DNA of 60,502 bases from Geosiphon pyriformis uo1 (GCA_016748015.1 JAAOMT010000529.1:348287-408788); one strand, 5' to 3'; positions 1-60,502 are shown, numbered from the stretch's first letter. Numbers and translations: made by a program. Notes: generated from the letters alone by a model not told the origin.

Positions 1-594
1 ACAACAGGAGTGAATATTCTTTTTTATCACTTATGAAACTAATATTATTAATCTCATTCTAAAGTTTAAAAGCTATGACATTTGATCAATATTAGATCTA
101 TTAAAAGTTGTCTAAATAGAATAGATAGTAAAATAAATAAAGTTTAAACAAGAGTATATAATACATTCTAACTTTTTTAACTCTTACTTTCAGGTAAATA
201 TACTAATTCTTTTAAAAGTAAATTAAGATAAAATAAAATTTTAATATATTGTATAACATTTAAATCAATGAATTATTCAATATAAAAATAGATAAACTAA
301 CCTTTAGAAAAATCAACCATCTGTGCAGTTAAAAGACGACCTGTATAAACTGCTCCTGGATGAATGCGCGTTGTTGAGTAATTTGTTGTAGAATCTTTCT
401 TCAACATTTCTCTTACTTATTTATATGATTCTACAAAATCAGAATTCCAAACCTCAAATTCCTTAAACTTCTTTCCAAGTTCAAACGCAGTAGGACGATT
501 CTCAGGATTAACATCCCAACACTTTACAATTATTTCAGCAATAGAAGGTTGAATAAATGGGGAAGTAATTTCAGGTCTAATACCATTTAAAATA
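1..594. repeat. Near-identical inverted repeat of 10295-10889 (3' part and downstream flank of kinase K3); runs off the window start
   Basis: The reverse complement of 1-60 matches 10830-10889 exactly. The match continues through introns and coding sequence with a handful of substitutions and one indel. Confidence 0.95.
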
Positions 595-1658
595 GCCATA
601 ATAAGAATATAATTATGAGAAGAATCATGAAAAGGAAGCTTTCCTGTTGCTAATTCCCATAATAACATTCCACATCTATAAATATCACCAGCCAAAGTAA
701 ACTTTTCTCCACTTAAAACTTCGGGTGGAATGTATGAAGTCACTACATATATCTTTTTTTCCTTCGCGTCTTTTTTTGTTGTTATGTCTATTGCTGTTGC
801 TTCATTGTTTACTGGTTGACATAATCCCAGGTCTCCTATTCTTGCTTTATTCCCATGATGAACCATACCAGAATAATTAATTAATTTAAGTCCATTGGCT
901 ATATGACGCGCGATTGATAACTTTCCCAACCAATAAATAGAATGAAAATTTGTTGATAAATATTTTCGGATGTCTCCATGTTCGGCAAACACTATCACAA
1001 TTCCATACTCGAGTGTTTCAGCGTTTTGCGTAATCCCAATATTGAAGAGACATAATAACCTACATACCCACCGTTATTAATAAACATAGCTCTCTGAATA
1101 TTTAACTATCAACACAATATAAGAAAGTAAATAGATAATAGAATAAAGTGAATAAATAATAGGTTAATTAAAAATGAATTTTATATAAATAGTAATAATA
1201 ATAGTTTTTTTTACCTCTTTAAACACTTCTGAGCTGTTCGTTTTTATGATTTTTATTGCTACATCTTCTCTTCTCTATCTTTCATATTCCATTGAGCCAT
1301 GATGTTTTATACCTTCTATATCAATTAATCCATCAATTAGGATTACTTTACAAATTATACCGAACCCTCCTTTAGCAATTTCGTTGATATCCAACAAACT
1401 CTCCCATGGAATCCATTCATAGTAATTCAAATAACCATTATATATTCTATGTTCACCTTCATTATTAGGCGGAATATAGATTGGGTTCTTAATCATTTCA
1501 TAAACTACTTTATTGCCATTTGAAAAGTCGCGGTAAGGTTTTTCAAAAAATATGAACTGGCATGCTCTATAATAAATATTACTATAATTCTTTTTAATAC
1601 ACTCTTGACAAAATTCACATAGGTTGCAATCATGAGTCTCTGAACGTTTTTTTAACAT
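101..1658 (-). pseudogene. TKL-family protein kinase pseudogene (copy K1)
   Basis: Same exon structure as the intact paralogs (exon 1 1658-1215, exon 2 from 1105). Defects: in-frame TAG at 1277-1275 (MEYER*RREDVAIK), a 1-bp deletion near 1036, loss of the catalytic loop (GMVHHGNKARIGDLG instead of HRDLHSGNILQ...GDLG), and TAC>TAA at 419-417. Confidence 0.9.
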
Positions 1659-2690
1659 GGTTTGTTTAGAAAGTAATTTTTTAAAAGTGGACTTAGTATT
1701 TATGTTATTTCTCTGAGTTCACATACTAAAAAAATCTTTAAAAAAAATGTTATACTGAATAGGTTTGAGTAACTTTACAAAGGAAAATGCTAATTGTTCG
1801 TGTTCTAGTTGTTATTGTTATTGTTGTTGTTATTTTTATTGTCGTTTTTATTGTGGTTATTGGAATTATTCGATTAGATAATAAGACAAAAAGACAATTA
1901 TGTTTAAAAGATCTTTTAATAAATGTGTTAAACTTAAATTAAAAACCATTATTACATGGGAAAATTCAAATTGTATATTTCACTCTATGATAAAGCTTTA
2001 AAAAATATATTACTGGTATATATAATACCCAGTTATTTTTTTTTATTTTTACCAAATTAAATATATAAGCAATTTACTAAATTTGAATGTCTTTTTTTAG
2101 TCTAAACTTTCTAACAACTTAATTACAGTTCTAACGAAAAATAATAGGGGTAATACTGTTATCAGAATTTATCCCGTTTCAAAATTCAGGTCGATATGTA
2201 AATGTCACATTTGTTTACCACTAATTTCAGCAAACCTCCAATTTATTCCCACCGCCACTAATTTTATTTTATCCCTTATTCTAGCCAGAACTTATACCTC
2301 TACCATTAAAAATCCTTGCGGAGAACCAATTGCAATAGGCGCAATTATAAGATATAAAAAAATAAATTAAAATTTGAAATATATTTTTTAACTTAATATG
2401 CTCCTTTAATTAAGCTTTATTTCATTTACTAACAAATCATAGGTTTTGAATAAGATAAAAAATAATAAGTTTTTTAGTGCATAATCAATTTTTATTAAAT
2501 TTTTATCATTTATTTGTCAATACCAATAAGATTAATTGTTATAATTTACTAAATTTAAGTATAACAATTATTTAATATAAATTAAAATGTATAATATTAT
2601 TAATTTATGTTTTTAACTATTATTTTATTTGTTAAATAAAAAATCATTTATAATACTTAATAGATTAAATAAAAATTGTTTTTTTTATTT

Positions 2691-3040
2691 ATCTGGTTGA
2701 ACATGATTCACATAAAATACTATTTTTTTATAAATTTCCCGCGAAATCTAGTCATAATTATTAAAAAAGTTGAAAAACAAAAGTTTTCAATTTCATCATT
2801 TTTTAAAAAATTTTAACATTAAGAAAAATTAATTATTATATTGCGTTTTTGAAAAATTCTCAAAAATTTTTTTAATTACAAAATATAACAAATTTTATAA
2901 ATGAATTTTAAATTTTAAATTTGTAATCTCTAAATAACAAAAATAATAAAAAATGAAAATTAACTTTTATTAAATCACTTTATGAGATTCTCTGAAATTA
3001 AGATATAATAAAATATGGTTATATTTTTTAAAAAATAAAA
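2691..3040. repeat. Dispersed AT-rich repeat, copy 1 (direct copy at about 11881-12140); likely a non-autonomous TE remnant
   Basis: ATCTGGTTGAACATGATTCACATAAAATACTATT...AAATCTAGTCATAATTA and TTTTTGAAAAATTCTCAAA...TTATGAGATT align colinearly with 11881-12140. Confidence 0.7.
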
Positions 3041-3951
3041 AATAATAATTAAATGTAATTTTATAAAATTCTTTATTAGAGAACAATTTTAATTTAATTA
3101 ATTATTTTTTTAATAAATATTTTTAATACCTTTGATTAATAGATAAAACTGGGGTTAAAATAAATAGGCTAAATTTTTAGAAATTTGAAACTAAACAATA
3201 AAAACTTAATAGGTTTTATAAATCTTCATGATAATAATTTTTAAATAAAGACTTCAAATTGAAAGTTATAGCTAATTCGAAATATTAATTTAAAAATAGG
3301 TTTTGAAATTTATTAAACTGAGAGTATTATTTTATATTAAAGAATGTATGTTAAATTTTAATCAAATTTAAAATTTTATGATTATTGGATATTTGTTCTG
3401 ATAAACGACAAAATTAAGAATTTATAAATAAAGAATTAATTCGTTTAATAAATATCTTAATCGAATATAGAGAAAATCAGACAAAAAAATTTAAAGCGGT
3501 CTTTAATAAACTTTTCTGCTTTAGTATTAGGCAAACTAAAATAATAAAATTTGTTTTTTGTATCCCTATATTGATTTTATTTAGACTCTTAATATGTAAG
3601 TGATAGCTTATTTAATTTTCATGGTTCACCCGAGCCCTAAATCATTTATTAGTATTATTGTTGTTGTTACTATTGTTCCAAAAATAAATTGAAATACTTG
3701 TTTAGGAAACATAACATAGAGACTTGTTTGGCGTTTTTCTGTATTATAGCTACTAAATTTATTTATAGATAAAATTTGTGAATGAATAGTACTTTGATGA
3801 ATATGATTTGTTATCATAGAGAAACAGTATAAATAGGGACTCCGCGTTTAAATAATTACTTTCTAAACGCACTATTAATAGAAGCTTTACAAAAGCCCTC
3901 AAGAATTATAACCTATTCATATTTTATACATTATCCACAATTATACACATT

Positions 3952-5582
3952 ATGGAAAACAAAGAAATTAAAAGAACTCGTCCAAATGCTCATGATTGCA
4001 ACCTGTGCAAAGAATGTCAAGAGTCTATTAAACACAATAAGAATAATTATTGTAGAGCATGCTGGTTCATATTTTTTGAAAAACATTATCGCGACTTTTC
4101 AAGCGGCAATAACGAAGTTGATGAAATAATTAAAAATCCAATCTATATTCCACCAAAGAGTAATAGTATTTTTGATGGTGGTAGTTTGAATTATTATGAA
4201 TGGATTCCATGGGAGCATTTGTCAAATATTGCGGAAATTTCCAGAGGAGGATTCAGTATAATTTATAAAGCAACCCTAATTGATGGATTAGTTGATGAAA
4301 AGAGTATAAAACATCACGGTTCAATGGAATGTACAAGGGCAAAAACTAATATCTTTAGAGAAAAGATTAATGAAGTAGCAATAAAAATTATAAAGAACAG
4401 CTCAGAAGTGTTTAAAGAGGTAAATAAACTTTTATTATTAATTCATATTTACTTATTATCTATTTACTTAATTTATCTTTTTTTTTTCACACTGTGTTGA
4501 TAGTTAAATATTCAAAGAGCTATGTTTATTAAGAATGGTGATAAATACATCAATAATATCTCTTCAATGTATGGAATTACGCAAAACGCTGAAACACTCG
4601 AGTATGGAATTGTGATGGAGTTTGCCGAACATATTTATCAACAAACTTTCATTCTGTGAGTTGGTTAGAAAAGTTATCGATCGCGCGTCATATAGCCAAT
4701 GGACTTAAATCGATTCATTCTTCTGATATGGTTCATTGTGACCTACACTCGGGCAACATCCTACAATTAAATGATGGGGATGTAAATATTGGAGACCTCG
4801 GATTATGTCGACAAGTAAACAATGAAGCAACAACAACAATAGATACAACAACAGGAAAAGCAACAAAGGAAAAAAAGATATATGGAGTGATACCATACAT
4901 TCCACCAGAAGTTTTAATAGGAGAAAAGTTTACTTCGGCTGGTGATATTTATAGTTTTGCCATGTTATTATGGGAATTAGCAACGGGAAAGCCTCCATTT
5001 CATGATCGTTCTCATGACCACCTTCTTATAATGGATATTTTGAATGGGGCTAGACCTAAGATTACCTCCCCACTTATTCCACCATGTATTGCCGAAATTA
5101 TTGTAAAGTGTTGGGATGTTAATCCTAAGAATCGTCCTGCTGCCAAACAAGTTAACGAGGCGTTGTGGGAACTTGGAGAGATCTATTGGAATTCTACAGA
5201 AAAGTCTAAACAGTTTTTAGAATCAGAGATATACGTGTTTGAAATGTTAATGAACGACTCTACAACAACAACAAACCCAACGCATATTCATCCAGGAGCA
5301 GTTTATACAAGTCGTCTTTTAACTGCACAGATGGTTGATTTTTCTAAAGGTTAGTTTATTTAATTTTAAATAATTCATTAATTTAATATTATATATTGAA
5401 ATTTATATTAATTTACTTTCCTTTACTTTTTAAAAGGATTAGTCTATTTGCCTGATGGTAATAAAAATTTTTACAATATCTAATTTATATATATGCAATT
5501 TTCTAATGCTTATTTATTTTGCTGTATATAATAATTAGCCGACTCTTACGCCCGATTCAATAAAAATATGATTTATACTTGA
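3952..5582 (+). pseudogene. TKL-family protein kinase, frameshifted (copy K2)
   Basis: Exons 3952-4419, 4504-5349, 5437-5457 and 5539-5582 (GT/AG). A 16-bp deletion at about 4632 relative to paralogs (GAACAT[GGTGACATGAGAAAAT]ATTTATCA) shifts the frame to a TGA. The catalytic loop reads HCDLHSGN. Confidence 0.88.
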
Positions 5583-6599
5583 TTTTAATTTGAAAAAGCC
5601 AGGTTAAATGAATTTATAGATAATTTTAAATATGGTATATCTAAATATATTTTAAATATGTTGAGCATATAATAAAATTATAAGTAAATTTCAATTGTTA
5701 TCTCATTGATTTAGTAATTGCTTGAAATATGATTTTGTTTTAAATAAAAATTTAATTGAAAAATTGTTTAAATGGCTCAATTAGTTTAAATTTTAATGTT
5801 TAAATTAATAACAACTGTTATTGTAAAATAAAATTAATTTTAAATTGTTTAATTTATATTGAAAAAAAAAATAGATTTTATAAATAAATAAATAAAGAAA
5901 ATTCCATTCGTTTTGTTAATTTTAAATCATCAGTCTTCGCAGAAACTACCGGATTTCAGATGTTTATTATTTTAGCCGCCCACACAAGCTTCCCGCAAAC
6001 GTTATTTTATAGTTTAAAATTTTATAAGATTACTAATTTTTATTAAAGTTTCTTAATTTATATAAGAATAACGATATGTTTACATTTTAAAAAATGTAAA
6101 ATAAACAAACAAACAAACAAACAGACATGATAAATTGCAGAATCAATTTTTTTGAAAAATTCAAATGATTTTTTTTTATATCTTAATGAGTAACCAACCA
6201 CATTTCAAATTAATTATCTGTTTGACTAATATATTGATACCTTATTTTTATTAATAAAATTTGCATAGAAATGATTTTAATAATTTTTATCAGAAATAAA
6301 AATAAAAACTTGATGAGCTTTTCATTTTAATTTTTAAAGCTCAATAAGTTTTCTAATCTAAAATTTTCTTTTAATTTTAATATTAAATATTTGTAAAAAA
6401 AATATATAATAAATCAAATAATGATTAATTTTAAATTATTTTTATTATAGTTTTATAATAGCTATAATAAATAGTAAATAATTGCACATAAATTTGACAT
6501 TTTTAACTATTTACATTCACTAATTTTGTTGAAAAGTAAAATCAAAATTATTATATTAAAAAAAATCATTTGATATTTTACTTTTTTGCAAGCTTGAAA

Positions 6600-7460
6600 A
6601 ACGACTTGATATACTGCACCTAGACCATTATTATTCCGTAGGTTTTTAACGTTTTTTCTACGTGGTTTTCTTATTATTTAAGGGGTAAACTGTCAGTTTT
6701 AGACTTTTTCATTAAACATCGCAGCATTAAGACGATTCAATAAATTGAGATTTCAACACTTTTCAATGAGCTTAGCAATATCAGGTGGAATAAGAGAGGA
6801 GATTATTTAGTTTTTTTTTTATCATGAGGATAGCATTATAAGAATAATTATCAAAAAAAGGCCAATTTTCATAATAACACGCTAAACTATAAATTTCATT
6901 GGCTATTGTGAACCTTTTTCCTCTTAAAACCTATATTGAATCATCCCAAATATATTTTTACCCTTTTTATTATCGAGTTTTTAAGTTGACTCAATCCAAG
7001 ATTTCAAATTATTGGATAAATTATGCATGAAATATTTAGCCTATATGCAATACTAAATGTTATTGCATTTTATGAGACAAAAGAATAGAATAAATATTTG
7101 GTATAATTCATTTTATACAGAGCTATAGGCTATGTCTTCAACTTAAGCTCTTTAAAAATTTATTTATGATAATTATAAAAATTAACGTAATAAATAAGTT
7201 TTGAACTTTGGTAAACATTCTTAAAGAGTTTATCACTATTTGCAATGATAGATTCAAAAATTCTATAGCAACCTAATCTTTAATATATATATATATTTTC
7301 CAGGAGGTGTATAGTATCTGAATAAAGATTATATAAATTAGATTTTGGGATTGTTTTAAAAGTCTTTTATTCTAAACTTTGTTAAAGAAATCATCACTCA
7401 CTCAAATCTCTAACTCAAAATAATATATATAAACTTTGAAAGGATTTCACAATGAGTCGC
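6600..7460 (-). pseudogene. Heavily decayed TKL kinase paralog (copy K9)
   Basis: Minus-strand remnants include KNIFGMIQY..VLRGKRFTIANEIYSL, ISSLIPPDIAKLIEKC*, GAVY..SR and FKEL, with many stops and indels. The 5' boundary is approximate. Confidence 0.7.
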
Positions 7461-8430
7461 AGATGGTATCATTAATTAGTATCCATACAAAAGTATTAAT
7501 GATTGAAATAACAATGAGTAACTATATTCTTATTATATTCTTGCTATTTTTAATATAAAACAAGAATTAAAGTTGAAACCTTAATTAGCGATACAAAAGA
7601 CAATATTAAGTAATTCAAGTAATCATAATTTAAAAACTTTTTCCAAATGAATTGACAATTAATTAAATTTAATATCTAGCGTATGTTTATTGATCGTAAA
7701 ACAATATTATAAAGAAAATAAAAACAGCAAACAAAAAAAAATCATATAAAATTAAAATTTTAAAAATATATTGTTAATATAAAATTTTATTCAAATTCAT
7801 CATTAAGAAAAAGTTAATAAAATTATATTAAAATTTTAATTTATAAATAATTTATTTATTTATTTAAAATTTTTTTTAGAAATATTAAGATTTTATTAAA
7901 ATATTTTTATAAATACTATTTCATTTTCAATCTTTCAAAATCAAATTTAAATTGAATTTATTAATCAAATCATATTATATACGAATATAATATGATTTTG
8001 AAAAAGCACTAAATAATTTACATTAATATTTTGTAGATGTTTTTATTTAGAAAAAAATTATTTGAATCAAAATAAATAATATTTTTAAACGTCAACAATA
8101 TATTAGTTTTATTAAATTTATAATGAAACAAAAATATTTTTTTATTTTATTTTATATGAATAAATTTTTTATAAAATTTACTAATATAATTAAGATCTTT
8201 TAATTTACCATAATTTTATAATTATTTTGAAAAGTATATTTTTTAAAATATTAATACTTGAATTAATAAAATTAAAACAATAACTTTTTAAATAGATAAT
8301 CTCAACTGAAACATTATACATTGTTTTATCAAATGATTGTGTAATTCCCAAAGAATAGTTAAAACTTTAGTTTTATTATTATCTCTTAGTTCTAAAGATG
8401 ATAAATTATGACCAATTTGATAATTTTTTG

Positions 8431-9145: not shown

Positions 9146-10789
9146 ATGGAAAACAAAGAAATTAAAAGAACTCTTCCAGTGACTCATGATTGCAATTTGT
9201 GTGAAAAATGTCAAGAGAGTATTCGAGATGGATGGAATAAGTGTAATGCATGCAAATTCATATTTTTAAAAAAACTTTATAAAGACTTTTCAAGCGGCAA
9301 TAAAGAAGTGGATGAAATAATTAAGAATCCAATCTATATTCCACCTAAGAGTAATAATAAATTTGGTAGTGGTAAAGTTAATTACTATGAATGGATTCCA
9401 TGGGAGGGTTTGTCGAATATCAAGGAAATTGCTAAAGGAGGGTTCGGTATAATCTATAAAGCAACCTTAATTGATGGATTAATTGATGTAGAAAGTATAA
9501 AACATCATAGTTCAATGGAATATAAAAGAGGAAGAACTAATAACTTTGAAGAAAAGATTGATGAAGTAGCAATAAAAATTATCCCAACCAACAGTTCAGA
9601 AGTGTTTAAAGAGGTAAACAAAGTATTATTATTTATATTTAGTTCACATTTAATTATTTCATATTTTACCTATTATTTATTTACTGTATATTAACGTCTA
9701 TTATTTATTCTATTATCTATTTATTAATTTATGATTTTTTATACTCTATTGATAGTTAAATATTCAAAGAGCTATGTTTATTAATAATGATGAACGCTTA
9801 TGTCGTATCTCTCGAATCTATGGGATTACGCAAAACGCTGAAACACTCGAGTATGGAATTGTGATGGAGTTGGCTAAACATGGAGATATGAGAAAATTTT
9901 TATCAACAAATTTTCATTTTATGAATTGGCGTGATAAGTTAATGATCGCGTTTCGTATAGCTGAAGGACTTGAATCAATTCATTTTTCTGGTATGGTTCA
10001 TCGTGATCTACACTCGGGCAACATCCTACAACTAACTAATAAATATATAAATATTGGAGACCTCGGATTATGTCAATCTATAAACAATGAAGCAACAACA
10101 ACAACAACAACAGAGAGAGCAACAGAAAAGAAAAAGATATATGGAGTGATTCCATACATTCCACCAGAAGTTTTAAGAGGAGAAAATTTTACTTTGGCTG
10201 GTGATATTTATAGTTGTGGAATGTTATTATGGGAATTAGCAACAGGAAAGCCTCCTTTTCATGATCGTTCTCATGACTACCTTCTTATAATGGATATTTT
10301 AAATGGTATTAGACCTGAAATTACTTCCCCATTTATTCAACCTTCTATTGCTGAAATAATTGTAAAGTGTTGGGATGTTAATCCTGAGAATCGTCCTACT
10401 GCGTTTGAACTTGGAAAGAAGTTTGAGGAATTTGAGGTTTGGAATTCCGAGTTTGTAGAATCAGATAAATACATAAGAGAAATGTTGAAGAAAGACTCTA
10501 CAACAAATTACTCAACAACGCGCATTCATCCAGGAGCAGTTTATACAAGTCGTCTTTTAACTGCACAGATGGTTGATTTTTCTAAAGGTTAGTTTATCTA
10601 TTTTTTGTATTGAATAATTCATTGATTTAAATGTTATACAATATATTAAAATTTTATTTTATCTTAATTTACTTTTAAAAGAATTAGTATATTTACCTGA
10701 AAGTAAGAGTTAAAAAAGTTAGAATGTATTATATACTCTTGTTTAAACTTTATTTATTTTACTATCTATTCTATTTAGACAACTTTTAA
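9146..10789 (+). CDS. Intact TKL-family protein kinase with Cys-rich N-terminus (copy K3)
   Basis: Exons 9146-9613, 9756-10587, 10682-10702 and 10779-10789 join in frame. Motifs present: KGGFG, VAIK, HRDLHSGN, GDLG, YIPPE, DIYS, CWD..PENRP. The N-terminus (CxxC..DFSSGN..VDEII..EWIPW) is typical of the expanded Glomeromycotina TKL kinases. Confidence 0.92.
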
Positions 10790-11787
10790 TAGATCTAATA
10801 TTGATCAAATGTCATAGCTTTTAAACTTTAGAATGAGATTAATAATATTAGTTTCATAAGTGATAAAAAAGAATATTCACTCCTGTTGTTGCTGCTTTTT
10901 CTAATTTAATGTTTCATTGTTTGCTCGTTAAATTAATCCAATTTTATGCAGTAGCTGATGAAATAATTAAAAACTAATGTTTGTTATTTTAATTGAAAAC
11001 TATTATTTAAAGCGTAAATTAAAAAAAATGGTATATATAATCAACATAAAAATTTATTAATTTGTTTAAAGAAAAAAAAGCAATCAAGAATTTTTAATTA
11101 ATTTGTCTACTATTAATTTGTTATTTTTAAATATGTTTTTTTTTACAAATATAATTTTTGAGAATAAATAAACCATAAATATTAAGAATTAGTCATAATA
11201 ATCTATTATCTTTATTATTTTATTCTTTTTATTATTGAATTTTTATATATATATAATATAATTAAATATATTAAACAAAAAACATTATCAATTTTGTAAA
11301 AAAATAATAATCCAAATTAAAATTTGCAAATAAATTAATCTATATATTTTATATTAGTTGGTTTTTTATCTACTGCTCTTTTATTATTTTATTTTACAAT
11401 TTCTGTAATTAACTCTTAAATGATAAATTTGTAAAACTTTTAAAGTAAAAAATTATTTTATTTATATACAAAATATTTCACGAAAATATAAATGAATTTA
11501 AATTTTTTAGTTTGAAATATTAAAAAACAACAACTAAAAATACACCCTATAATTCTTACTTTTTAAATTTCCCAAAACATAATAAATGCTACTAAACTAA
11601 TAAATTAAATTATAACATTAATTCAAGATATTGTTTTTCTCTGATACAATTGAATAATTTGTAATGTTTTTTTTCGAAATATCTAATTTCAAGTTTTTTA
11701 ATTATAAATAAAAATTATTTAAATTTTTAAATCATTTTTTAAATTCGAGATTTAAAATTTAACTATTGAAAAAAGTTGAAGCTGTTA

Positions 11788-11860: not shown

Positions 11861-11880
11861 ACTGAAAATTGGTTTTTATT

Positions 11881-13979: not shown

Positions 13980-15197
13980 CTTTAGGCAAATAGACTAATT
14001 CTTTTATAAAGTAAAGTAAATTGATGTAAAATTTTAACATCCCAACACTTTTCAAATGAGTTCGGTAATATAAGAGGGAAGGTAGTCTTAGGTCTTTAAG
14101 TATTTAAAATAGCCATTATAAGAATATGATCATGAGAAAAATCATGAAAAGGAGGCTTTCCTGTTGCTAATTCCCATAATAACATGGCAAAACTATAAAT
14201 ATCACCAGCCACAGTAAACTTTTCTCCTCTTAAAACTTCTGGTGGAATGTATGGAATCACTCCATATATCTTTTTTCCTTTGTTGTTGTTGCTTCATTGT
14301 TTGTAGGTTGACATAATCGGAGGTCGCAAATTCGTGTGTTAGATGTCATAGATTTATATTGTAGGATGTTGCCCGAGTGTAGGTTACGATGAACCATACC
14401 AGAGTCATGAATTTCTTCAAGTCCTAAAGCTATTTGAAACGCGATCGTTCTTTTTTCTGTGAAACTTATAGAATCTATAGAATGAAAGTTTTTTGATAAA
14501 TATTTTCGCATATCTCCATGTTTTGCAAACTCCATCACAATTCCATACTCGAGTGTTATAGTGTTTTGCGTAATCCCCAATATTGAAGAGATACAACTTA
14601 AATACCCATACTTAATAAACATAGCTCTTTGAATATTTAACTAACAACACAATGCAAAAAAGTACATAGATAATATACAGTAAATAAATAAATAAATAAA
14701 AGGTAAATATGAATTAATAATAATACTTTTTTCACCTCTTTAAACACTTCTTCACTGTTCGTTTTTACAATTTTTATTGCTACTTGCCGCTCTCCATATC
14801 GTTGATATACACCATTACATCTTATACTATGTTTATTAATTTGTCCATCAACCCATGTTGCTTGATAAATTATACCGAACCCTCCTCTAGCAATTTCGTT
14901 AATATTTGACAAACGCTCCCATGAAATCCATTCATAGTAATTAACTCTACCATTACTATAATTATTTTTAGGTGAAATATAGATTGGATTCTTAATTATT
15001 TCATCAATTACTTTATTGCCGGTTGAAAAGTCGCGATAAAGTTTCTCAAAAAATATGAATTTGCATGCTCTACACAAATTATAATCCTTTTTAACGCTTT
15101 TTTGACACAAATCACATTGGTTGCAATCATGAGCATATTGACGAATATTCTTAACATAAGCTTCAGAGTGCATTTTTTTAGTTTGAAGATTCCCCAT
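13980..15197 (-). pseudogene. TKL kinase pseudogene (copy K4), with catalytically dead motifs
   Basis: Exon 1 is 15197-14736 and exon 2 starts at 14640. Motifs read HRNLHSGN and CDLR. One A is missing from the A-run at about 14271-14276 (frameshift). The C-terminal part of exon 2 is deleted: the sequence jumps from CWDV at about 14036 into intron 2. Confidence 0.88.
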
Positions 15198-15632
15198 CGT
15201 GAATAAAAAGTGAATAGGTTATTATTCGAAAAAGTTTTTTAAAAGCTTTATTTGATAGTATGGTTAGATAGTAATTATTAAAGAGGGGAGTTCGTATTTA
15301 TGTTTTTCTCTAAGTAGTTATAATACGTAAATTACGCCAAACAAAGTCTCATCATTATGTTGCCTAAATGAGCTGTTCAATTTCTTGTAGAACAATAACG
15401 ATTTAGGCTTTGTGTGAAACATAAAAGATATTGTAGTACTAAAAATCATTGTGCACCAAAACAGAGTCAATAAATTGATTTGTTACACTATGCGAACATA
15501 GAAGAAACAACATAAGTAAGAACTCGCCTTTAGACAAATAACTTTCTAAACCTACTATCAAATAAACCTTTAAAGAAACCCTCTTTGAATGATAACCTAT
15601 TCCCTTTTTATCCTTTGGCCTTTATTCACACG

Positions 15633-17314: not shown

Positions 17315-17340
17315 AGAGATTTTTAAAATATAATCAAACC

Positions 17341-23640: not shown

Positions 23641-27607
<3,967 letters not shown>

Positions 27608-49171: not shown

Positions 49172-49928
49172 TACATGTATAAGGTTTTTTACAAAAGACC
49201 AGTCAAAGATTTTTATTCAACCACATTCATTACCTTTAAAACAAAACTTATAACTCCCTGTGCAAGTTCATTATAGCTTAAAAGAAAGTTAAAAAAGCCA
49301 TTTCATTATAATTTCACCAGATTTGATGATTAAAATCTAACCATTAAAATGATATAAAAGCAGAGAATCGGATATTTTTCCCCATCTAATTATGAAATTA
49401 ATTACAACTTTCTTTGGAATATTAATCCAATTTTGAAAAGTGTTTTACATAATAATTAGCTTGTCATCATTTGTCAAAAACAAAAATAAGATATTCTTCT
49501 TTACTATAGAAAAATCTAATCTATAAAAAATCTTTGGGCATGTGATAAGTTTGATTTTTTACTGCGATACCAGTTTTTCAAGTTATTGAAAACAAACCAA
49601 AAAGCCATTTCATTAGAATAAAATTTCATTTTAATTATTATTTTAAGTTTTTGCACCTTTTTTTTATGTTTTCTATAAAAATTGGTGTAACTAATATTAG
49701 TTTTTTTATCTTTATGAAATGAATCTAAAATCATTATAATTTAAAATATATAATACACTTTATTATGAGTGAATTATATTTATCAAAAGTTTTCTAAATG
49801 TAAATTCTTTAAAATTTCTGAAATATATACATAAATTCTGTTTTGAAAATATCATTTAAAAAAAAGTGAGCTATGATGAATCAAAGAATTAATCAATATA
49901 AAAACTTTACTAAATTAGATAAACTAAC

Positions 49929-50305
49929 CTTTTGTTTCTTGAATCATTTGCAAACTTAAAAGAGGACTTGTATAAACTACTTTTGGATGAATGTATTGAA
50001 TAATTTGTTGTTGCATCGTTCTTCAATATTTCTTTTACATATTTATTTGATTCTTTAAACTGTTCTATTTCAGACGCATTAGATTCATGCAGTTCTAAAT
50101 CTTAATAAGTTCCCCCAAATTCTTTTCAACTCTTCGGCAGTAGGAAGATTCTTAGAATTAGGATCCCAACACTTTTCAATGAGTTTAGCAATTGAAGGTG
50201 TAACAAGTGGGGAGGTAATCTTAGGTTTAGCCCCATTTAAAATAGCCATTACAAGAAGATGATTATGTTTACGATCATGAAAAGGAGGCTTTACTGTTGC
50301 TAATT
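49929..50305 (-). pseudogene. 5'-truncated TKL kinase C-lobe fragment (copy K8)
   Basis: Reads LATVKPPFHDRKHNHLLVMAILNGAKPKITSPLVTPSIAKLIEKCWDPNSKNLPTA...HPKVVYTSPLL..QMIQETK, ending at the conserved AAAG|GTTAGT donor. Confidence 0.88.
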
Positions 50306-51760
50306 GCTAAAATTAATAAACAGGTTTAACTATAAATGACTCAAGTGGCTATAATGCACAAAGAGGCCAAACAAGTTTGCCTAATAAAATTTAAACGTAA
50401 TACGACGCCTGACCATTTTGTTTATCCACAAGTACTTTTGGCACATCACTCAAACCTCTAACTTAAAAATAGTGCTGGGAATGATTTCACTATAGGTTAC
50501 ACAGATTTCTATGCCTAAAATTGTATTAATGGCTGAAATAAAAATTAGAGTTTAAACCCTAATTTGCGATAAAAAAAATCAATTATCATTTGATCAATGA
50601 TCAAATTAAACCTATTTCTGTCTAAATTTCTTTGAAAAAATCAAGGACATATTCATATTAAAGTAATAAATATGTAGTATATTTTAAAGATTTTTTTAAA
50701 TAAAAAATAACTGATTAATTTTGAAAATTATCATTGTAAAATAAAATGAAAAACGAAATAAAGCCAGCATCAGTTAAATAATTTTAAAAAAAATTTGGTC
50801 TATCTAATTTGAGTTATTTTATTTAATTAAATAATATCATAAATTTTAAAAATGGATTGATTAAATTAATTTTTATAAATCATACATAATTTGTTATGTT
50901 TAACATAAAAATTCATTTTCGGTTAAATGTTTCAGTTTCTAATTTTTTTAAAAATCGAATTTAAAAATTGTTAATATTTCAAAAAATCCTTTATTTAAGT
51001 ATAATGTAAATTGAATAATTTTAAAATATATTTCTTGTCTAATTAATTTTTTTTAAAAAAAAAGCAAAACAACAAGTTTGGAAGTTTCAACTGAATAAAT
51101 CTTAGTTCTAAAGATGATAATTATTAAGGTGAATTTAATATTTTTTAAATAATACTACACACTTCGGCTTAACAGAAAACAAGTTTGAATTGCAGATATT
51201 AAAATGGTAAATTAGCGGCCAATTTTTTGATAAAATAGAGTCACATTACTTAATCAATTTGAAATTTATACCGCCCTTATTTAAAAGTCTCTAATTAGTT
51301 TGTTTTATAAAAAATATTTTATAGATGATGTAAGAGAAGAACTTCCTTTCATATCTAAAATTTTGATGTATGAGTTCAAATTTAGTTTAGAGAGAAACTG
51401 AAGAGCTAATAAAAACAAAGAAATTAATGTTTTGGTGGATCATCCCACAAAGCCTAAATCGTTTTTATCATTATTATTGTTGCTGTTCTATAAATAAATT
51501 GGAGAAACGTGTTTGGCGTTTTTATTTATTATAGCTACTTAAAATTTATTCATATTTAGTATGATTTGTAGCTGATGAATAAGGTTGAGAAATAGATTTG
51601 TTACACTATGCGAACATAGAAGAAACAACATAAATAAGAACTCGCCTTTAGACAAATAACGTTCTAAACGTACTATCAAATAAACGTTTAAAGAAATCCT
51701 CTTTGAATAATAACTTATTCACTTTTTATCCTTCTTTATCCTTTGTTCTTTATCCACATC

Positions 51761-53284
51761 ATGGAAAATCAAGAAATTAATAGATATCGTCCAGATGTTC
51801 ATGATTGCAACGAATGTAAACGGTGTCAAGGATGTATTAAAAATAATCGTAATAATAATAATTGTAGAGCATGCTGGTTTATATTTTTTGAAAAACATTA
51901 TAAAGACTTTTCAAGCGGTAATGACGAAGTTGATGAAATGATTAAGAATCCAATCTACTTTCCACCTAAGAAGAATAATTATGAGGGTAGTTTGAATTAC
52001 TATGAATGGATTCCATGGGAGCGTTTGTTGAATATCAATGAAATTGCTAGAGGAGGGCTCGGTATAATTTATAAAGCAACCATAATTGATGGATTAATTG
52101 ATGAGCGTAGTATAAAACATCATGGTGAGATGGAATATAAAAGAGGAAAATTTAATGAAGATGAAGAAAGGATTGATGAAGTAGCAATAAAAATTATCCC
52201 AACGAACAGTTTAGAAGTGTTTAAAGAGGTAAACAAACTATTATTATTTATATCTATATAAAATTAATTCATATTTATCTATTATTTATTCATTTATTTA
52301 CTGTATATTATCTATTTATTTTTTTACAGTTAAATATTCAAAGAGCTATGTTTATTAAGAATGGGTATTTTGGTTATGTCTCTTCAATATTGGGGATTAC
52401 GCAAAACGCTGAAACACTCGAGTATGGAATTGTGATGGAGTTTGCCGAACATGGTGACATCCGAAAATATTTATCAAAAAACTTTCATTCTATAGATTCT
52501 ATAAGTTTCACAGAAAAAAGAACGATCGCGTTTCAAATAGCTTTAGGACTTGAAGAAATTCATGACTCTGGTATGGTTCATCGTAACCTACACTCGGGCA
52601 ACATCCTACAATATAAATCTATGACATCTAACACACGAATTTGCGACCTCCGATTATGTCAACCTACAAACAATGAAGCAACAACAACAAAGGAAAAAAA
52701 GATATATGGAGTGATTCCATACATTCCACCAGAAGTTTTAAGAGGAGAAAAGTTTACTGTGGCTGGTGATATTTATAGTTTTGCCATGTTATTATGGGAA
52801 TTAGCAACAGGAAAGCCTCCTTTTTATGATCGTTCTCATGACCTTTTTCTCGTGATGGATATTCTTTATAATGGTATTAGACCTAAGATTACCTCTCCAC
52901 TTATTCCCCCTTCTTATGCTGAAATAATTGTAAAGTGTTGGGATGTTAATCCTGAAAATCGTCCTACTGCCAGAGAAGTTTATGAGATGTTGAATGAGCT
53001 TACGTTTTCGGAGTCCGAGTTTTGGGATTCAGATAATTACGTAAAAGAAATGGTAAAGAACGACTCGACAACAAATCATTCAACAACAACGATAACTCAC
53101 ATTCATCCAGGAGCAGTTTATACAAGTCGTCTTTTTACTTTGCAAATAATTGAAGAGACAAAAGGTTAGTTTATCTATTTCGTATTGATTAATTTATTGA
53201 TTTAATTATTTTACATTATATTAACAATTTAATTTATATCAATTTATAAAAGAATTTGTTTATATGCCTGAATATAAGAGTTAA
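51761..53284 (+). CDS. TKL-family pseudokinase with intact ORF (copy K6)
   Basis: Exons 51761-52228, 52330-53164 and 53253-53284. The third donor is mutated GT>AT, so it reads through to EFVYMPEYKS*. Motifs are GGLG, HRNLHSGN (catalytic D>N) and CDLR (DFG-equivalent G>R). Confidence 0.85.
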
Positions 53285-55300
53285 AAAAGTTAGAATATAA
53301 TTATATACTCTTATTTATTTTATTATCTATTATATTTAGACAACTCTTAATAGATCTAATTGTGATCGCTCATCTTAATTTTCCATTCGTGAATTATCTC
53401 ATTTTTAAGCTCTATAATGAGATTATTATGTTTATTAAATTCATTTCAATATATATTCTTTTATTAATTCATTATAAAGAATATTCTTCACATCTAAATA
53501 ATAATATTTTTTAAAACTAATTTATAAGTAAATTATATTGGAAAACAATTTATTAAAAATTAATAAAATAATAAATTTTTAAATAAATATAACAATCTAA
53601 AAATATCGAATAATCAAAATAAATAAGTAATTTCTAAGAAATCTGCAATCTTTAAAATAAAGCTATAGTTTATAACTTTATAGTTTATTGCTAATAAATC
53701 AATAAAAAGTTTTTTTCCTGCTGAAGGTATAGTCCAACCACAGACTATTTTCTTAAGACACATTTATCATACATTAGACGTGTATCGTAAATAAACCGCG
53801 CGTAACCAGCCGCTCAACTACTCTTTAGCAAATTTCCGATTGGATACTAGTTTCAAAAATTCATCTCCAAAGATGTTACACTGTTTGAAGCGGCTTGCGT
53901 ACGCCCATGTCGCATAAATATCCAAGCCTCAAAAAAAGTTTTAATTATTAAATAATTAAATCCAAATTTTTTTTAGCAATAATTAAATAAATTAAATTAA
54001 TTTATTTAGAAAATGAAAATTTAGAAAGAAATTAAACTAATGAATTTAAAATTTAAAATTTGTTATAAAATTTATATTTTATCTAAAAAAATTCAATTAA
54101 ATATTAAAACCAAATTTATTTAACAAAGTTTTATAACACATTTTGAAATTTTAGGTTATTGTATTTTTATATAATTATCATATGTTAATTTAATATTAGT
54201 AAAACAAATTTTTAGTATAAATTGTTTTTATTTTATGTAAATAAATTAAAATACAAATTTAAAATAAAATTACTATATTTTAAATTGATAAAAAGATTGT
54301 AGATAATTTAAATTAATGAAAAAAGCTTTAGATAATTTAAAAATAAAAATATCAAAACAATTTTAAATATTTATTGAATCGATTTTCGTTTCAAATCTAT
54401 TGATAATTATCTAAAATATTAATTTTTTTGTAGAGTAATAAATTAATAACCTAAGGTTATTTAAAAAAAATAGAATAGAAGTTTATAAATTTAAAAATTA
54501 AAAATTTTTACATTTTTTTTAAGAACTTAATAAATTTACTTAGATAACTTAAAATCTAAAATATAAATATTTCTTTATTTGTTATTATTATATTTTGAAT
54601 ATTAAAATTTAATAAACATTTAAGAATTATTTTTAAATTAGATGAGATTTAAATTTTCAAAACTATTCTATAAAATACATTAATAAATAAATATTTTATC
54701 TTTTAATGTGTTGGTAGCCAATATTTTCGAATGTTTCGAAAGAGTTAAGGAATAGCTTTTGAGCAATATTTTAGGGTAGAATCGCTGATTCTTGACGGAT
54801 ATAATATTGTCCAATCGTTTTTGATATTTCTATCGTAATTTTGTTTGGGCAACTATTTCTTTTTCGGTGTTTTCTGTTGTGTTTTATCTTCAACTTTTTG
54901 AACTGACCTCTCCTTCAATAATCTATTAAAACTTATTACCGTGTTTTATATTAGACGAAGACATTTCTTGACTATAATTGTGCAAATGTGGAAGGAAAAT
55001 ATGTTTCAAAACTTGTAAAATTATACAGGACAAATAGTTTGAAATGTAAATTATTTGATAATAGAATCGTAAAATTTTTAAAAGTATACTTCAGAATATA
55101 CTTTATTAATTAATTCAAATTGAGCTTTGAATTTTCCCATTGTAAAAAACTAAAATTAAGGCTAGCTCGCAAGATAATTTGAGAATAAAAAAAATTATAT
55201 ATGCCTATTTAGATTTAAATCTCAATTAACAAGTTTTATGTTAGACACTCAACATAAATATTTAAAAATATTAAATGTTTTATCAATATTTTTACAGAGG

Positions 55301-56650
55301 CTAGTTTTTATTTTTAACTTCACGATTACAACCACCATTTTCGGTCAGTTCATTCAATGCACCATAAGTTTCTGAATTGAAACCCTGCAAATATTTTTGA
55401 CTCAAGAACTGAGAAAGCAATTTAACTTTTCTTTTCAAAACTTCAATCTCATTCATTTGAACTGCAGGCGACGGAGTCGATTCCAATCTCTCATTTGAAT
55501 GACTCATCGTATCAACTCCCAACATCAAATTATTGTTTAATTCCGATAACGGAGAATGAGATGGTGATCGATCAATTTTGAAACATGGAACATCAACATT
55601 TTGTTGGGCCGAAGTTGGAGAAAGATCATGTAAAATGTCTGCGCGTTTAGACTTTGATTTTTGGCGGTTTTTCTTGGCGTCAGGGGAGCTTTGGAGAAGA
55701 TATTGTTGGATTATGCCCCAAGACTTAAATTTTCCATTACCAAAAAGAATTAGCCATATCGCAGAAATAAAGGTCAACAAGCCACCAACAGATGCAATAA
55801 AGTCAACCCAATTATAAGCTCTCTTTTCTGTATATCTTGTGACCTTGAAAATAATATGAAATTTTATTTAATCATTAATTGAGGTGTGAGATAAAGATCT
55901 ATCATAGAAACTTACCAAAAAATCGATTGGAAAATAAATAATCTCACATATTAGAAATCCTGAAATATCCAGAGACTTTTCATGCTGAAACTTTTCACTC
56001 TCTTTGTACCAGTGACTATTTCCTTCTACATCAATCCTCTCAATCGATTTGAATGTGAGCTTATGCAGCTCACCGTCACTTAATTTGAATGTCTTCCCGT
56101 CTTGATAATTGTCAATTCCTACATATGTAGTATAAAATAAACCAATTGAATCTTTCAAAGGAGTTTGTCGAATTAGATTACGCCAAAATCTGATTCTAAT
56201 CGATTCTATTCCTTCTCGTTTATAAATTAATTTCGAGTCATTTGATTGCTGAAATAATAAACATGGAACTGGATATTCTTCACGAGGTTCGAATTTAACT
56301 CTTGTAGAATTTGATGCTGTCCCATTCATAAAAATATAATCGGAGGCTATATTATTATCCGCAATTTGATATTCTATTGTCACTTTTTCTATGGCCGTTT
56401 CAAATTTTTGCGAGTCCTTTCGATCAAATACGCAAATGTATGCGTCTGGAACTGGAATACCATTGATATATTTATTATTAAGTAGTGAAATAGATATTAA
56501 TGGCTCTTGGTTGTTAAATAATTTTTTAAAGTTTGGGGTTGAGACGATGATAATGATTGCACAAAGAGTGGTGGAAACTAGAAGACGAATTCCTAGTTCT
56601 GGATTTCGTTTTAAGTAACCTATTTTTCTAAAAAGCTTTGAAAAAAACAT
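55301..56650 (-). CDS. Two-TM membrane protein with a large extracellular loop (ENaC/ASIC-like topology), paralog A
   Basis: Exons 56650-55916 and 55843-55301 join in frame. TM1 (IRLLVSTTLCAIIIIVS), then GIPVPDAYIC, then TM2 (WVDFIASVGGLLTFISAIWLILFG), followed by GKFKSWGIIQQY. Confidence 0.82.
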
Positions 56651-57419
56651 AATTTTCAAAGATAAAATAAAAAATATTTTCTAGCACTAAATGGAATGAA
56701 TATAAATTTGGAAATGATATTGAAAAAAAAGACTAATATGTCTGAAAATAGATGAATATAAGGAAAATTAAATTCTTGCTTAGTTTTGTAGATAGGAAAA
56801 AAACTTGAACCGATGAGTAAAAAAAATGCTTTACTAAAATTTTTTTATCAACATAGAGATGCTAATATTTCTCATAGAGGATTACAATGGCATGATTATT
56901 TAGTTTATTATTTTTTGTAAGTTTTAAACTTGGAAATGGGCTTTACTATAGATAAATTATGGATAATCAAAAGTTCTTTCGGGATTTTGTAAACCAACTA
57001 AATAAACCAAACGAGGATAAAATTAAATAAAATCTAAAGAAAATAATCATTATAAATATTTTTACTTTGAGGTAGCATTAAAAATTTTAAAATAAACCAT
57101 TTTTTGGTGATAATTGTTCCAGGAAATATCTTAAACTACTTATCATTAATAACATTCATTTTCCATAAATAAAAATTTAGGTAAACATTCATAAACAGAT
57201 TCAATCGATACACCGAGTAGAAAGTATTGGTGGAATGATTGATCTTTGGAATTTATTTGCTTGTTTTTTTTAAAAATTTGACCAAAAAAACATTTCTATC
57301 AAATTTTCCTTTTAGTTATAATTTTTTTTTTGAATTTTTAATCTCTTGAATATAAAACCCAATTAGTCAAATTCCATCTGTTAAATTTTCATTTGTCCTC
57401 TCACAATTTTAAATTTAAA

Positions 57420-58839
57420 ATGAGTGTTCTTCATTCGCTTCCAAAGTTAAACGCTGAACTAATAATTCGCCTCATATTTGGTCTCAGTATTTTCTCAATA
57501 ATCGTCGCCATGACAATTCCTACCTTTTTCAGAGTTTTCATATATCAAGACCCCTTAATTTCAATCTCTATAAACCACAATACATCAGAAAGTGGTATTC
57601 CAGTGCCAAATGCCTTGCTCTGTCTAAATATGATAATATTCCCTTATTTGAAAAATATAACTGTTTTGAGTGGACAAGATATTCTTTTTGGTTCTATTGA
57701 TCTAGAGGATAATGGAAGGTCATCAAATGAGACAAGATTGGTCTTACGAAAAATAGGTAGAAAGTTTAAATGTTTAGCTTTTAAACCTGAGAGTTCTCTG
57801 AAATACTATCAAGAAGCTGTGGATTTTGTTCAAATAATATTTTATTACAGAAATGAGTACGAAAGTAAAATAAATTATTTTCAGGAAATATGGAATGAAA
57901 TGTGGAAGAATGAACAGTTTGGATTTGTATGGGTTACATATGATTCAGTTAATGGCACTTATCAAGAGAGAGAATCAATTAAAATCAAACCAAATCAACT
58001 TACTGCTATCACCTTAAATCCGACCGAAAGAATAGATGTGAACGGAAATAGTCATTGGTACAAAAATGTTCCCGATAATTTTAAAGAAGACCCAATCCCA
58101 GGATACCCTTTTAATTTAGTTGAAGTTTGGATTTATCCGATTAATTCTTTGGTGAGTTTTCAAATTTAGATTGATGAAAATTCAGAAAAATTGACTATCC
58201 AATTTTTTAATGACTTTTTTATACATATAATTATAGGTAACACAATACACGGAAAAAAACGAGGTCACTTGGATTGATATTTTTACTGATGTAGGTGGTT
58301 TACTGGCGTATGCTTCCGGAGTATGGATAATATTATTCGGTCGTGGACGTTTTAAATCATGGGGTTATATACAACAATATATTCTCAAAACCGCACCAAA
58401 TGCTAATATACGAGGGCAAAAACAAATCAAAGGTTCACCAATATTACCAATTGAAGACTTTAAAAAGAATCTCTATTCACCAAGCGAAAATTCTCAGAGT
58501 GATACTTTAAGTAGCGTCACCACGTTTTTGTCTACCTCTAACTTTGGTGAACCTTTCCAATGCAACTTTGATAGTATCAATGAGAAGTCTAGCATTAAAG
58601 GTGAAAGTTCATACTCAGAAAAAAATCTCCAGTCTTGCAATCGCTTACCAAAAATAGTTTTAGATTATGAAAATAGTCATGAACGAATGTTTACAGATGA
58701 TTTACAGGTATTGCAAAGGAAAGTGAACTTGATTGAAAAAATGTTATGTCAAGAGTATTTAGAAGGATTTGGTTTAGAAACTTTTGATAAGATGAATCAG
58801 ACTTTTAATAGTGAAAAATTACCTGAAGTTAAGTTTTAA
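57420..58839 (+). CDS. Two-TM membrane protein with a large extracellular loop (ENaC/ASIC-like topology), paralog B
   Basis: Exons 57420-58151 and 58237-58839 join in frame, with the same intron position as paralog A. Motifs GIPVPNALLC, ERIDVNGNSHWYK and WIDIFTDVGGLLAYASGVWIILFGRGRFKSWGYIQQY. Confidence 0.82.
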
Positions 58840-59559
58840 AAGCTACTTATTTTTACTTAATATATTTCAAATAAATAATTCAATTTTTAAAATTATAATT
58901 TTTAAGTCGTAATGATTCCAAAACAAAAGGGAGTAAAAATTAGAAAGATCATAATAACAATTAATATTTACATACAGTTAAGGTTTTTTTTGAATACAAT
59001 TAAGTGAAAATAAGAATTTTAACGTTTTAGACATATAATCAATGAAATATTTGGGCATAAATCCTTCGAAAAGCTAGAATTTTACCTAAAATCAGACAAC
59101 TATGTTCAAAGATCTGATAATTTCTAACTATATTTCTTTTATATATTTCTTAAAAAAGAAATTTGACTGGTTTTTCAAGAATTTAAATAAATTTTTAAGT
59201 GTAAATAAAAATTTTGAAAAATTAGTCTGAAAAACTATTAACATTCTCTTTTCAAGTCACAAACATTAATAAATTTACTGCTTATTTTTATATCTTTTTT
59301 TTTGATTTGACCAACTTTAAGATTTATTTTTACCTTTTTCAAATATAATAAATAATGAAAAAATTTCTGTTCCACGAACTATCTCGGAAAATTAGTTCGG
59401 CTAGGGCCGGAAATTGCAGAATTTTATTTGATTGGTTATTAAAAAACGTGATACGTTTTAATTATGTGTTTAATGTAATTTTTATCCGTTACCTGAATAT
59501 TTAAAATAATAAAGTTAGGTAATTAAATAAAGAAAATGTATGAATAAAAAACGCGTAAA

Positions 59560-59860
59560 TACTTAGCATTTTGACAAGTTGTGCTATTATGCCCTGGTTG
59601 ACTGCATCTACCACAGGTTTATGTACGTAATTTTCCTTTTTTTTCAGTAATAGATTTATAACATTTGGTTTCTGGGCATTTCTTTCATCGTAAAACTAGT
59701 GAATTTTCAATTGGTCCAGATCCATTTTCCTTGTTTGCATTATTAGCTTGGATTTCAGAGGGTTCTTAAAGATTTCGATTTTGCATTGACCTGGTAAGTG
59801 TAGCTGCTATTTTTTTATGCCGATTAATGAACTCTTTTAACCATGACAACATTTTATCAT
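59560..59860 (-). mobile_element. Decayed MULE/FAR1-like transposase C-terminus with zinc knuckle
   Basis: The minus-strand frame reads ..IENSLVLR*KKCPETKCYKSITEKKGKLRT*TCGRCSQPGHNSTTC. This is a decayed RxKGRP motif plus a CX2CX4HX4C knuckle, typical of MULE transposase tails. Confidence 0.7.
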
Positions 59861-59865
59861 GATTA

Positions 59866-60502
59866 TAAAAATTATAAAAACGAGCAGTCCAGAAGTGTTT
59901 AAAGACGTAAACAAACTAGTAATATTAATATTTATATTTAATTCATATTTACTTATTATTTATATATTTACTGTATATTATCTATTTATTTCTATACACT
60001 GTGTTGATAGTTAAATATTCAAAGTGGTATGTTTATTAATAAGGGTGGGTATAAAAGTCGTTATATCTCTCCAATATTGGAGATTACGCGAAACGCTGAA
60101 ACACTCGAGTATGGAATTGTGATGGATTTTGCCAAATATGGTGACATGCGAAAATATTTAGCAAAAAATCTTCATTCTACGAGTTGGCCTGATAAATTAG
60201 AGATCGCGCAAGATATAGCTTTTGGACTTGATTCGATTCATTCTTCTGGTATGGTTCATCGTGATCTACACTCGGGCAACATCCTACAATATGTGAAAGA
60301 TGAAGTGACTATTGGAGACCTCGGGTTATGTCAACCTACAAACACAAACAATGAAGCAACAACAACAGAGGAGAAAAAGATCTATGGAGTGATTCCATAC
60401 ATTCCACCAGAAGTTTTAAGAGGAGAAAAGTTTACAACAGCTGGTGATATTTATAGTTTCTCCATGTTATTATGGGAATTAGCAACAGGAAAGCCTCCTT
60501 TT
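59866..60502 (+). pseudogene. 5'-truncated TKL kinase (copy K7); exon 2 is open to the window end
   Basis: Only KIIKTSSPEVFKD of exon 1 remains, then an intron, then exon 2 from 60011: LNIQSGMF...HRDLHSGNILQYVKDEVTIGDLG...YIPPE...ELATGKPP. Confidence 0.85.

Follow-up and report, generated by a model that had tools for sequence, protein, structure and literature searches.

Interlocus gene conversion that yields mosaic paralogs is a classical process in the plant NLR and Xa21-type receptor-kinase clusters, in primate KIR and MHC genes and in opsin/RH duplicates. A similar pattern is described here for the final 60.5 kb (60,502 nt, hereafter the window) of contig C609 in the assembly of Geosiphon pyriformis (128 Mb, 792 contigs). 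This organism is a Glomeromycotina fungus with the cyanobacterial symbiont Nostoc, and it is not a root-colonising arbuscular mycorrhizal fungus. The window, which is AT-rich (GC 15-37%), was found to contain a three-exon gene for a tyrosine kinase-like (TKL) kinase in seven copies, along with two fragments of it. As in the clustered families, short non-reciprocal tracts, mosaic genes, incongruent segment trees and tract ends within conserved stretches were observed, together with pseudogene partners and with conserved blocks that are homogenised next to divergent islands that persist. The favoured reading, held with a probability of roughly 0.8, is that of a birth-and-death kinase family in which repeated ectopic gene conversion has made patchwork copies.

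The kinase copies were located by tblastn and with an nhmmer profile. The family set comprises 45 copies (from 60 genomic loci and the window) and is a subset of the whole family, so that at least 45 copies with 75% or more DNA identity are present in the genome, out of 332-341 first-look candidates. The unit is a gene of roughly 2 kb, in which exon 1 ends at the motif EVFKE, the second intron is short and exon 3 is tiny; intron 1 measures 75-158 nt, with GT..AG borders in 45/45 copies. Exons were searched singly, and the only spliced sequences used were the annotated models of the database. Whole-gene alignments among copies gave 73-83% identity, and stops or frameshifts were detected in 13 of the 45 copies (~29% broken). 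The copies of the window, numbered K1 to K7, and the two fragments are the following; a further copy, K0, sits 3.5 kb upstream of the window.

300-1688 (-): K1, pseudogene with a 1-nt deletion, the catalytic loop deleted and stops in both exon frames
3904-5354 (+): K2, broken by a 16-nt deletion and a frameshift in exon 2 (tblastn and nhmmer; also delimited as 3952-5354)
6583-7017 (-): degraded kinase fragment, part of the C-lobe (nhmmer score 76)
9146-10592 (+): K3, intact, annotated as G9A89_008320 (P0011)
14033-15236 (-): K4, 3'-truncated pseudogene, annotated as the 273-aa G9A89_008321
15633-17055 (+): K5, intact, annotated as G9A89_008322 (P0002)
49924-50344 (-): Kf, decayed 3' kinase fragment (tblastn, nhmmer)
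51761-53284 (+): K6, intact three-exon gene, annotated as G9A89_008332 (P0001, 444 aa), with a tblastn and nhmmer match at 51761-53169
51761-52228 (+): K6 exon 1
52229-52329 (+): K6 intron 1
52330 to about 53164 (+): K6 exon 2, matching G9A89_008332 at 100% as a protein query
about 53252-53284 (+): K6 exon 3
59865-60502 (+): K7, partial, cut by the end of contig C609

K7 is incomplete because the contig stops at window position 60502, and the frameshift of K4 is due to a run of A that is one A shorter than in K6.

Tracts shared between diverged copies

Pairs of copies were found to share tracts at an identity far above that of the remainder of the genes. The tracts that involve copies of the window are given below.

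K6 52462-52824 (+) and K4 14147-14508 (-): 362/362 plus one missing A (362/363)
K6 52765-52972 (+) and K5: 205/208, with 151/153 in the sub-stretch 52828-52980
K3 10290-10889 (+) and K1 599-1, inverted: 98.2% over 600 bp
K3 9468-9622 (+) and C609:215915: 153/155, the partner lying about 142 kb off on the same contig
K3 9563-9787 (+) and C694:67850 on another contig: 220/229, spanning intron 1 (segment tree 100/99)
K5 15189-16361 (+) and the pseudogene C624:341294: about 1.17 kb, with 296/296, 681/692 and 121/121
K7 60236-60324 (+) and K5: 87/89

The clearest case is the block common to K4 and K6, since the whole-gene alignment of this pair reaches 80%, as against 362/363 inside the block. It contains the alphaD-alphaE region, the catalytic loop, the loop after NILQ and the activation segment. 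The K5-like block of K6 overlaps it where K4, K5 and K6 are all identical. The K1/K3 tract covers the C-lobe, the tail, the stop codon, intron 2, exon 3 and the 3' flank, and the 3' flank of K3 (10601-10889) is moreover identical (289/289) to that of C609:41674. In K5, the tract shared with C624:341294 extends from the 5' flank through exon 1 and intron 1 into the start of exon 2, and the remainder of this pair is 83-90% identical. Since introns and flanks are included, the tracts are events at the DNA level and are not limited to coding cassettes. The partners are inverted (K1/K3, K4/K6), tandem or divergent neighbours, distant on the same contig, or located on other contigs, and nearest neighbours in sliding windows likewise placed tract partners outside the window. 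Three of the partners are pseudogenes (K1, K4 and C624:341294). The tract ends fall in the most conserved blocks.

In a permutation test of the GENECONV style (2000 runs, 990 pairs), the K4-K6 run extended over 162 consecutive polymorphic sites, compared with a permutation maximum of 134; in this test, rows that carry the terminal gaps of truncated copies (K7, K4, C788_707932 and others, with spans to column 1849) are artefacts. When mismatches were tolerated and terminal gaps were treated as missing, 13 of the 990 pairs were globally significant, and in 9 of the 13 the two copies lie on different contigs. The global P values were < 0.002 for K5-C624:341294 and for K4-K6, and 0.016 for K1-K3; the zero-mismatch test gave 0.028 for K5-K6 and 0.043 for K3-C694:67850. 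Pairs from a genome-wide census of tracts were not counted as conversions, as the conserved C-lobe of a closely related subclade dominates that census.

Trees were built with IQ-TREE for five segments. The sister of K6 was found to be K0 in exon 1 (100/98), K4 in 52462-52824 (100/100) and K5 in 52828-52980 (100/99). By approximately unbiased (AU) tests, the groupings K6+K0 (p = 0.003) and K6+K5 (p = 0.008) were rejected in the K4 block, K6+K0 was rejected in the K5 block (p = 2e-6) and K6+K5 in exon 1 (p = 5e-5). A single congruent tree is rejected by the permutation test, the segment trees and the AU tests alike. Bounded tracts, significance after correction and supported incongruence between segments, three of the marks by which interlocus gene conversion is recognised, are present in this family.

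Read evidence was taken from Logan unitig sets of the same organism, which derive from two studies and consist of short unitigs. The assembly contains the K4/K6 block at 100% identity in exactly two places, the next best match being 85%, and its unitig depth is 157-163, compared with 76-90 in single-copy flank. The reads therefore hold two copies of this block. A separate observation concerns the 3' end of K6 (52952-53327). Its unitig depth is 167-190 (run X1), about twice that of the single-copy flank, and the assembly contains it only once at 100%, with the next best match at 82%. Given double depth and a single occurrence, a twin of this stretch seems to be missing or collapsed, and it may correspond to the unassembled 3' half of K7.

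An earlier note on this stretch, made from the sequence alone, had proposed that the nearest relative of a copy changes along the gene, and the tests above agree with it. Four of the resemblances that it listed were recovered as tracts: the catalytic block that K6 shares with K4 except for one A, the C-lobe of K6 that is near-identical to K5 (52828-52980 against 16711-16863), the 3' end common to K1 and K3, and the sequence common to K7 and K5. The other resemblances it had assigned to K6 fared differently. Exon 1, described as K2-like, is 81% identical to K2 and equally so to K3, and its closest relative is K0 (86% by blastn, 90% over aligned columns). The promoter is indeed K5-like (94%), but it is also 88-92% identical to many further copies, and the 3' flank, described as K3-like, is K3/K1-like at only 80%. 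The three resemblances are family background (80-94%) and not swapped blocks.

The kinase and its variable segments

The profile PF07714 (PK_Tyr_Ser-Thr) matched exon 2 of K5 and K6 with E-values of 3e-37 and 5e-35, and PF00069 was above threshold too. An AlphaFold2 model of the K6 product, P0001, was built with a family alignment of 61 sequences. It reached a mean predicted local distance difference test (pLDDT) score of 85 and a predicted template modelling (pTM) score of 0.87, disorder being confined to the activation segment (residues 269-275) and parts of the tail. The top Foldseek matches of the model were RIPK1, RIPK2 and RIPK4, followed by TrkA, MLKL, Roco4 and BRAF. The RIPK kinase domains were matched with E ~1e-15 and TM scores of 0.76-0.83 on the target. 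The family was assigned to the TKL-type kinases because RIPK1, RIPK2 and RIPK4 rank nearest, and the expanded gene is predicted to encode a cytoplasmic RIPK-like TKL kinase.

Catalytic motifs are widely kept. Among the 38 intact copies of exon 1, RGGFGII was counted in 24, VAIK in 33 and EVFKE in 30; among the 31 intact copies of exon 2, HRDLHSGN was present in 24, IGDLGLC in 26 and PYIPPEV in 29. Domain profile, catalytic motifs and fold thus all point to a TKL kinase, with K4 and K6 as exceptions in the motifs. In the block common to both copies (K6 52560-52680, K4 14290-14410), HRNLHSGN and ICDLRLC replace the HRDLHSGN and IGDLGLC of the family, and HRN occurs in one other copy, C525:5663. 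Because the catalytic Asp is lost, K6, which is otherwise intact, is probably a pseudokinase. Like the TKL kinases with solved structures, the Geosiphon consensus retains the G-loop, VAIK, HRD and the D of DFG. It differs from the RIPK/TKL structures in its identity of 20-25%, in the HRDLHSGN loop and in DLG at the position of DFG, and also by extra N- and C-terminal modules and by the lack of death, CARD or RHIM domains. It was further observed that the catalytic loop has, throughout the family, a His at a position that in most kinases is taken by Lys or Ala-Ala-Arg, and that this active-site signature, HRDLHSGN with DLG for DFG, is unusual for an entire subfamily.

No Pfam family matched the N-terminal 95 aa or the C-terminal 50 aa. 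The N-terminal module (K6 residues 14-62, window 51761-52000) is present in all copies. It carries near-invariant H14, C16, C19, C35 and C38 (H-x-C-x2-C ... C-x2-C), followed by SGN..D..I, and was modelled with a pLDDT of 79-95; it probably binds zinc as a domain that packs against the kinase. At the other end, the motif IHPGAVYTSRL is conserved in the family. The conserved stretch IHPGAVYTSRLL follows a hypervariable Thr-rich tail in all copies (K6 53110-53166), forms a beta-strand in the model (residues 423-428) and is kept across Glomeromycotina genera. Homologues from Rhizophagus, Diversispora and Gigaspora were found to have the same architecture, with a CxxC...CxxC module, a TKL kinase domain and an AVYTSRL C-terminal motif.

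The kinase expansion of Glomeromycotina belongs mostly to the TKL group. The Geosiphon family resembles these expansions in its very high copy number, and in Rhizophagus irregularis an expanded kinase repertoire of 2,533 members has been described (PMC10234402). In the protein search, in which a single Geosiphon assembly is represented, about 100 annotated Geosiphon proteins showed 47-74% identity, compared with 38-49% for other Glomeromycotina. The expansion is therefore specific to the Geosiphon lineage, and the subfamily differs in this respect from other Glomeromycotina kinases.

The earlier note had named five strongly variable segments between almost invariant blocks. Entropy and gap profiles agree with it on the Cys spacers, the linker after IYIPP, the alphaC-beta4 loop, the beta7-beta8 turn after NILQ and the activation segment, and they add the beta2-beta3 insert, particular alphaD-alphaE positions and the C-terminal tail. 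Almost every intact copy has its own variant of three of these segments, with 31/31 unique variants of the loop after NILQ, 29/31 of the activation segment and 37/38 of the IYIPP linker. The claim that the exchanged blocks contain variable loops also held, as tracts carry whole variable segments.

The ratio of non-synonymous to synonymous divergence (dN/dS) by the Nei-Gojobori method (NG86) was 0.12-0.46 in the kinase core, which is under purifying selection, and 0.8-1.9 in the variable loops, with intervals that include 1. When changes were counted on local trees, the IYIPP linker gave a ratio (omega) of 2.15 (P = 3e-4). The signal was left in place by a correction for AT bias with an intron-derived mutation spectrum, which raised omega to 3.06, and P ranged from 3e-4 to 3e-8 over the analyses. 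This linker is indel-rich, of low complexity and rich in N, D and K, and its omega was not accepted as positive selection because misaligned AT-biased codons differ almost only non-synonymously. For alphaD-alphaE, tree counting gave an omega of 1.3-1.43 (P = 0.016-0.06; 1.43 with P = 0.016 on local trees). Coming from a helix that aligns well, this weak signal is the one that most suggests diversifying selection. The activation segment gave 1.44 (P = 0.06), the other loops gave about 1.0-1.4, and no single site was significant after correction for 528 sites. The variable segments would be loops or exposed positions under weak constraint, some of which may be under diversifying selection.

Alternative explanations and the surrounding genes

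According to the favoured explanation, the family would evolve by birth and death, that is by duplication, dispersal and breakage of copies, and repeated non-allelic (ectopic) gene conversion would copy tracts of about 90-1200 bp from paralog to paralog. Copies that are otherwise 15-25% diverged would be patchworks because conversion copies tracts between them. The conversion would be of the generic homology-directed kind, the variable segments would travel as passengers, and new combinations of loops would arise as a by-product.

Several results weigh against this explanation. No direction of transfer was detectable between tract partners; none can be read because the inactivating indels of K4 and of C624:341294 (a 1-nt insertion and a 14-nt deletion in the latter) lie within the shared tracts. 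Many shorter tracts in the C-lobe of a closely related subclade could reflect purifying selection. The short unitigs end at the borders of blocks (one begins at 52464) and bridge no mosaic junction, and the support from read depth covers the K4/K6 tract alone. Moreover, two results would not be predicted by relaxed constraint and leave room for selection that maintains loop diversity. One is the omega above 1 in the IYIPP linker and alphaD-alphaE. The other is the synonymous divergence of the loops (0.3-0.9), which exceeds that of the blocks (0.07-0.26) and the p-distance of the introns (0.18), and which could be attributed to escape from homogenisation, to indel turnover or to misalignment.

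Unequal crossing-over or partial segmental duplication, with a single reciprocal exchange or a duplication breakpoint at every junction, could account for the similarity of K5 and C624:341294, which consists of one 5' block between the flank and exon 2, and for that of K1 and K3, which consists of one 3' block reaching into the flank; in both pairs one breakpoint could suffice. It is nevertheless a very unlikely origin of the whole pattern, as the internal tracts (K4-K6 52462-52824; K3 9468-9622 and 9563-9787) have diverged sequence (20-25%) on both sides and therefore require conversion or a double exchange, not a single crossover. Single crossovers between inverted partners or partners on other contigs would also invert or translocate DNA, yet ordinary single-copy genes lie between the copies. 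The analysis shows the tracts, their statistical excess, the incongruent trees, the double depth of one block and the kinase fold; that conversion and not a double crossover made the tracts is inferred, as would be any direction of transfer and any selection on the loops. It is just as hard to credit that collapse, chimeric joining or mis-polishing made the near-identical blocks, even though the assembly is a draft in 792 contigs with a contig end inside K7, in its most conserved block. Within their common block, K4 and K6 differ solely by an A in a homopolymer, a kind of change typical of sequencing errors; the 3' part of K6 has double depth and a single assembly copy, so that at least one copy is missing or collapsed, and the junctions are unspanned by the short unitigs. 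The K4/K6 block, however, has double depth in the reads and is present twice in the assembly, and any pairing of its four diverged flanks leaves two genes with an identical core in a background diverged by about 20%. Reads of 80% identity do not mis-map in polishing, the pattern repeats in 13 or more pairs on many contigs, and K6 would need two consecutive switch errors.

The earlier note had attributed the pattern to segmental gene conversion that recombines variable cassettes, as in immune or non-self-recognition loci, and had seen in it a candidate for an undescribed system. The first half stands on the permutation test, the incongruent trees and the bounded tracts that pass through introns and flanks. 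The second half, a dedicated immune-like cassette system, is not supported. In its selective form, it would be a diversity-generating repertoire in which conversion, partly from pseudogene donors, shuffles hypervariable surface loops for the recognition of non-self or of symbionts. The near-total uniqueness of the loops, the transfer of whole variable segments by tracts, the pseudogenes among the partners and the omega values of the IYIPP linker (2.15-3.06) and alphaD-alphaE would all fit such a repertoire. So would a loop synonymous divergence above that of introns, which is expected if selection shields old loop alleles from homogenisation, and a predicted fold nearest to the RIPK immune kinases. 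Such a repertoire is still very improbable. The tracts take in promoter, introns and 3' flank and not just cassettes, and no direction from donor to expressed acceptor is visible among the pseudogene partners. No site passes multiple-test correction, the strongest omega sits in a linker prone to misalignment, and four of the named loops have omega values of about 1.0-1.4 with intervals that include 1. The proteins are kinases without a ligand-binding domain, ~29% of the copies are broken, and K6, the best mosaic, is without the catalytic Asp. Flanking terminal inverted repeats or other special features were likewise not found. The pattern corresponds to generic ectopic gene conversion with birth-and-death turnover, and nothing found supports an undescribed, dedicated system.

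In its broadest form, this proposal would mean that Geosiphon, and perhaps Glomeromycotina generally, keep more than 100 RIPK-like kinases, with their zinc-finger-like N-terminal module, as a combinatorial repertoire, in which conversion, pseudogenes included, reshuffles loops that are selected to be different. This is just as improbable; if true, the repertoire would provide recombination-driven recognition or signalling (hyphal compatibility, symbiont sensing) in a fungus without known sex.

The possibility of a transposon-carried gene (Pack-type element) was also considered and was rejected, since a search around the K3 and K6 units gave no terminal inverted repeats or other element ends, but only AT-rich chance matches with 70-80% complementarity.

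Between the kinase copies, at 24-47 kb, the window contains ordinary genes (DPP IV/S9 peptidase, BTB protein, lyase, F-box protein and KH protein). Further features of the window are listed here.

35783-38545 (-): open reading frame of 920 aa, no Pfam match at E <= 0.001
55301-56659 (-) and 57393-58839 (+): two paralogous gene pairs in divergent arrangement, no Pfam matches

The two pairs comprise open reading frames of 263 aa and 258 aa with a common ...ERIDV.GNSHWYK... and downstream open reading frames with a common ...LQRKV.L...L.QEYLEGF... motif. It was also observed that contig C609 breaks off in K7, in the block where the family is most conserved, and this family evidently fragments the assembly.

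Relation to known systems

The literature search brought up no account of gene conversion or of mosaic genes among Glomeromycotina kinases, the Geosiphon genome paper lying outside the reach of that search. The present results document statistically a frequent ectopic recombination between dispersed paralogs in a genome of the Glomeromycotina, for which the existence of sex and recombination is a matter of debate, and they show that the members of the large kinase expansions of these fungi have not evolved independently of one another. Unless recombination is modelled, dN/dS scans, gene trees, orthology calls and the dating of duplications will mislead for such families, and draft assemblies break or collapse within these kinase genes.

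The Geosiphon family differs from the NLR, Xa21, KIR, MHC and opsin families in that it encodes a fungal cytoplasmic TKL kinase (as predicted) without a recognised ligand-binding domain, and in that partners are found on other contigs too. With the pseudogene conversion of chicken Ig V genes, the VSG mosaics of trypanosomes and the repeat shuffling of fungal NLRs it shares the copying of blocks that contain variable segments and the presence of pseudogene partners. In contrast to these programmed systems, no expressed acceptor, direction of transfer, somatic variation, dedicated cis element or enzyme is apparent in the one Geosiphon assembly. The Geosiphon kinase mosaics are a clear case of ordinary gene conversion between duplicates.

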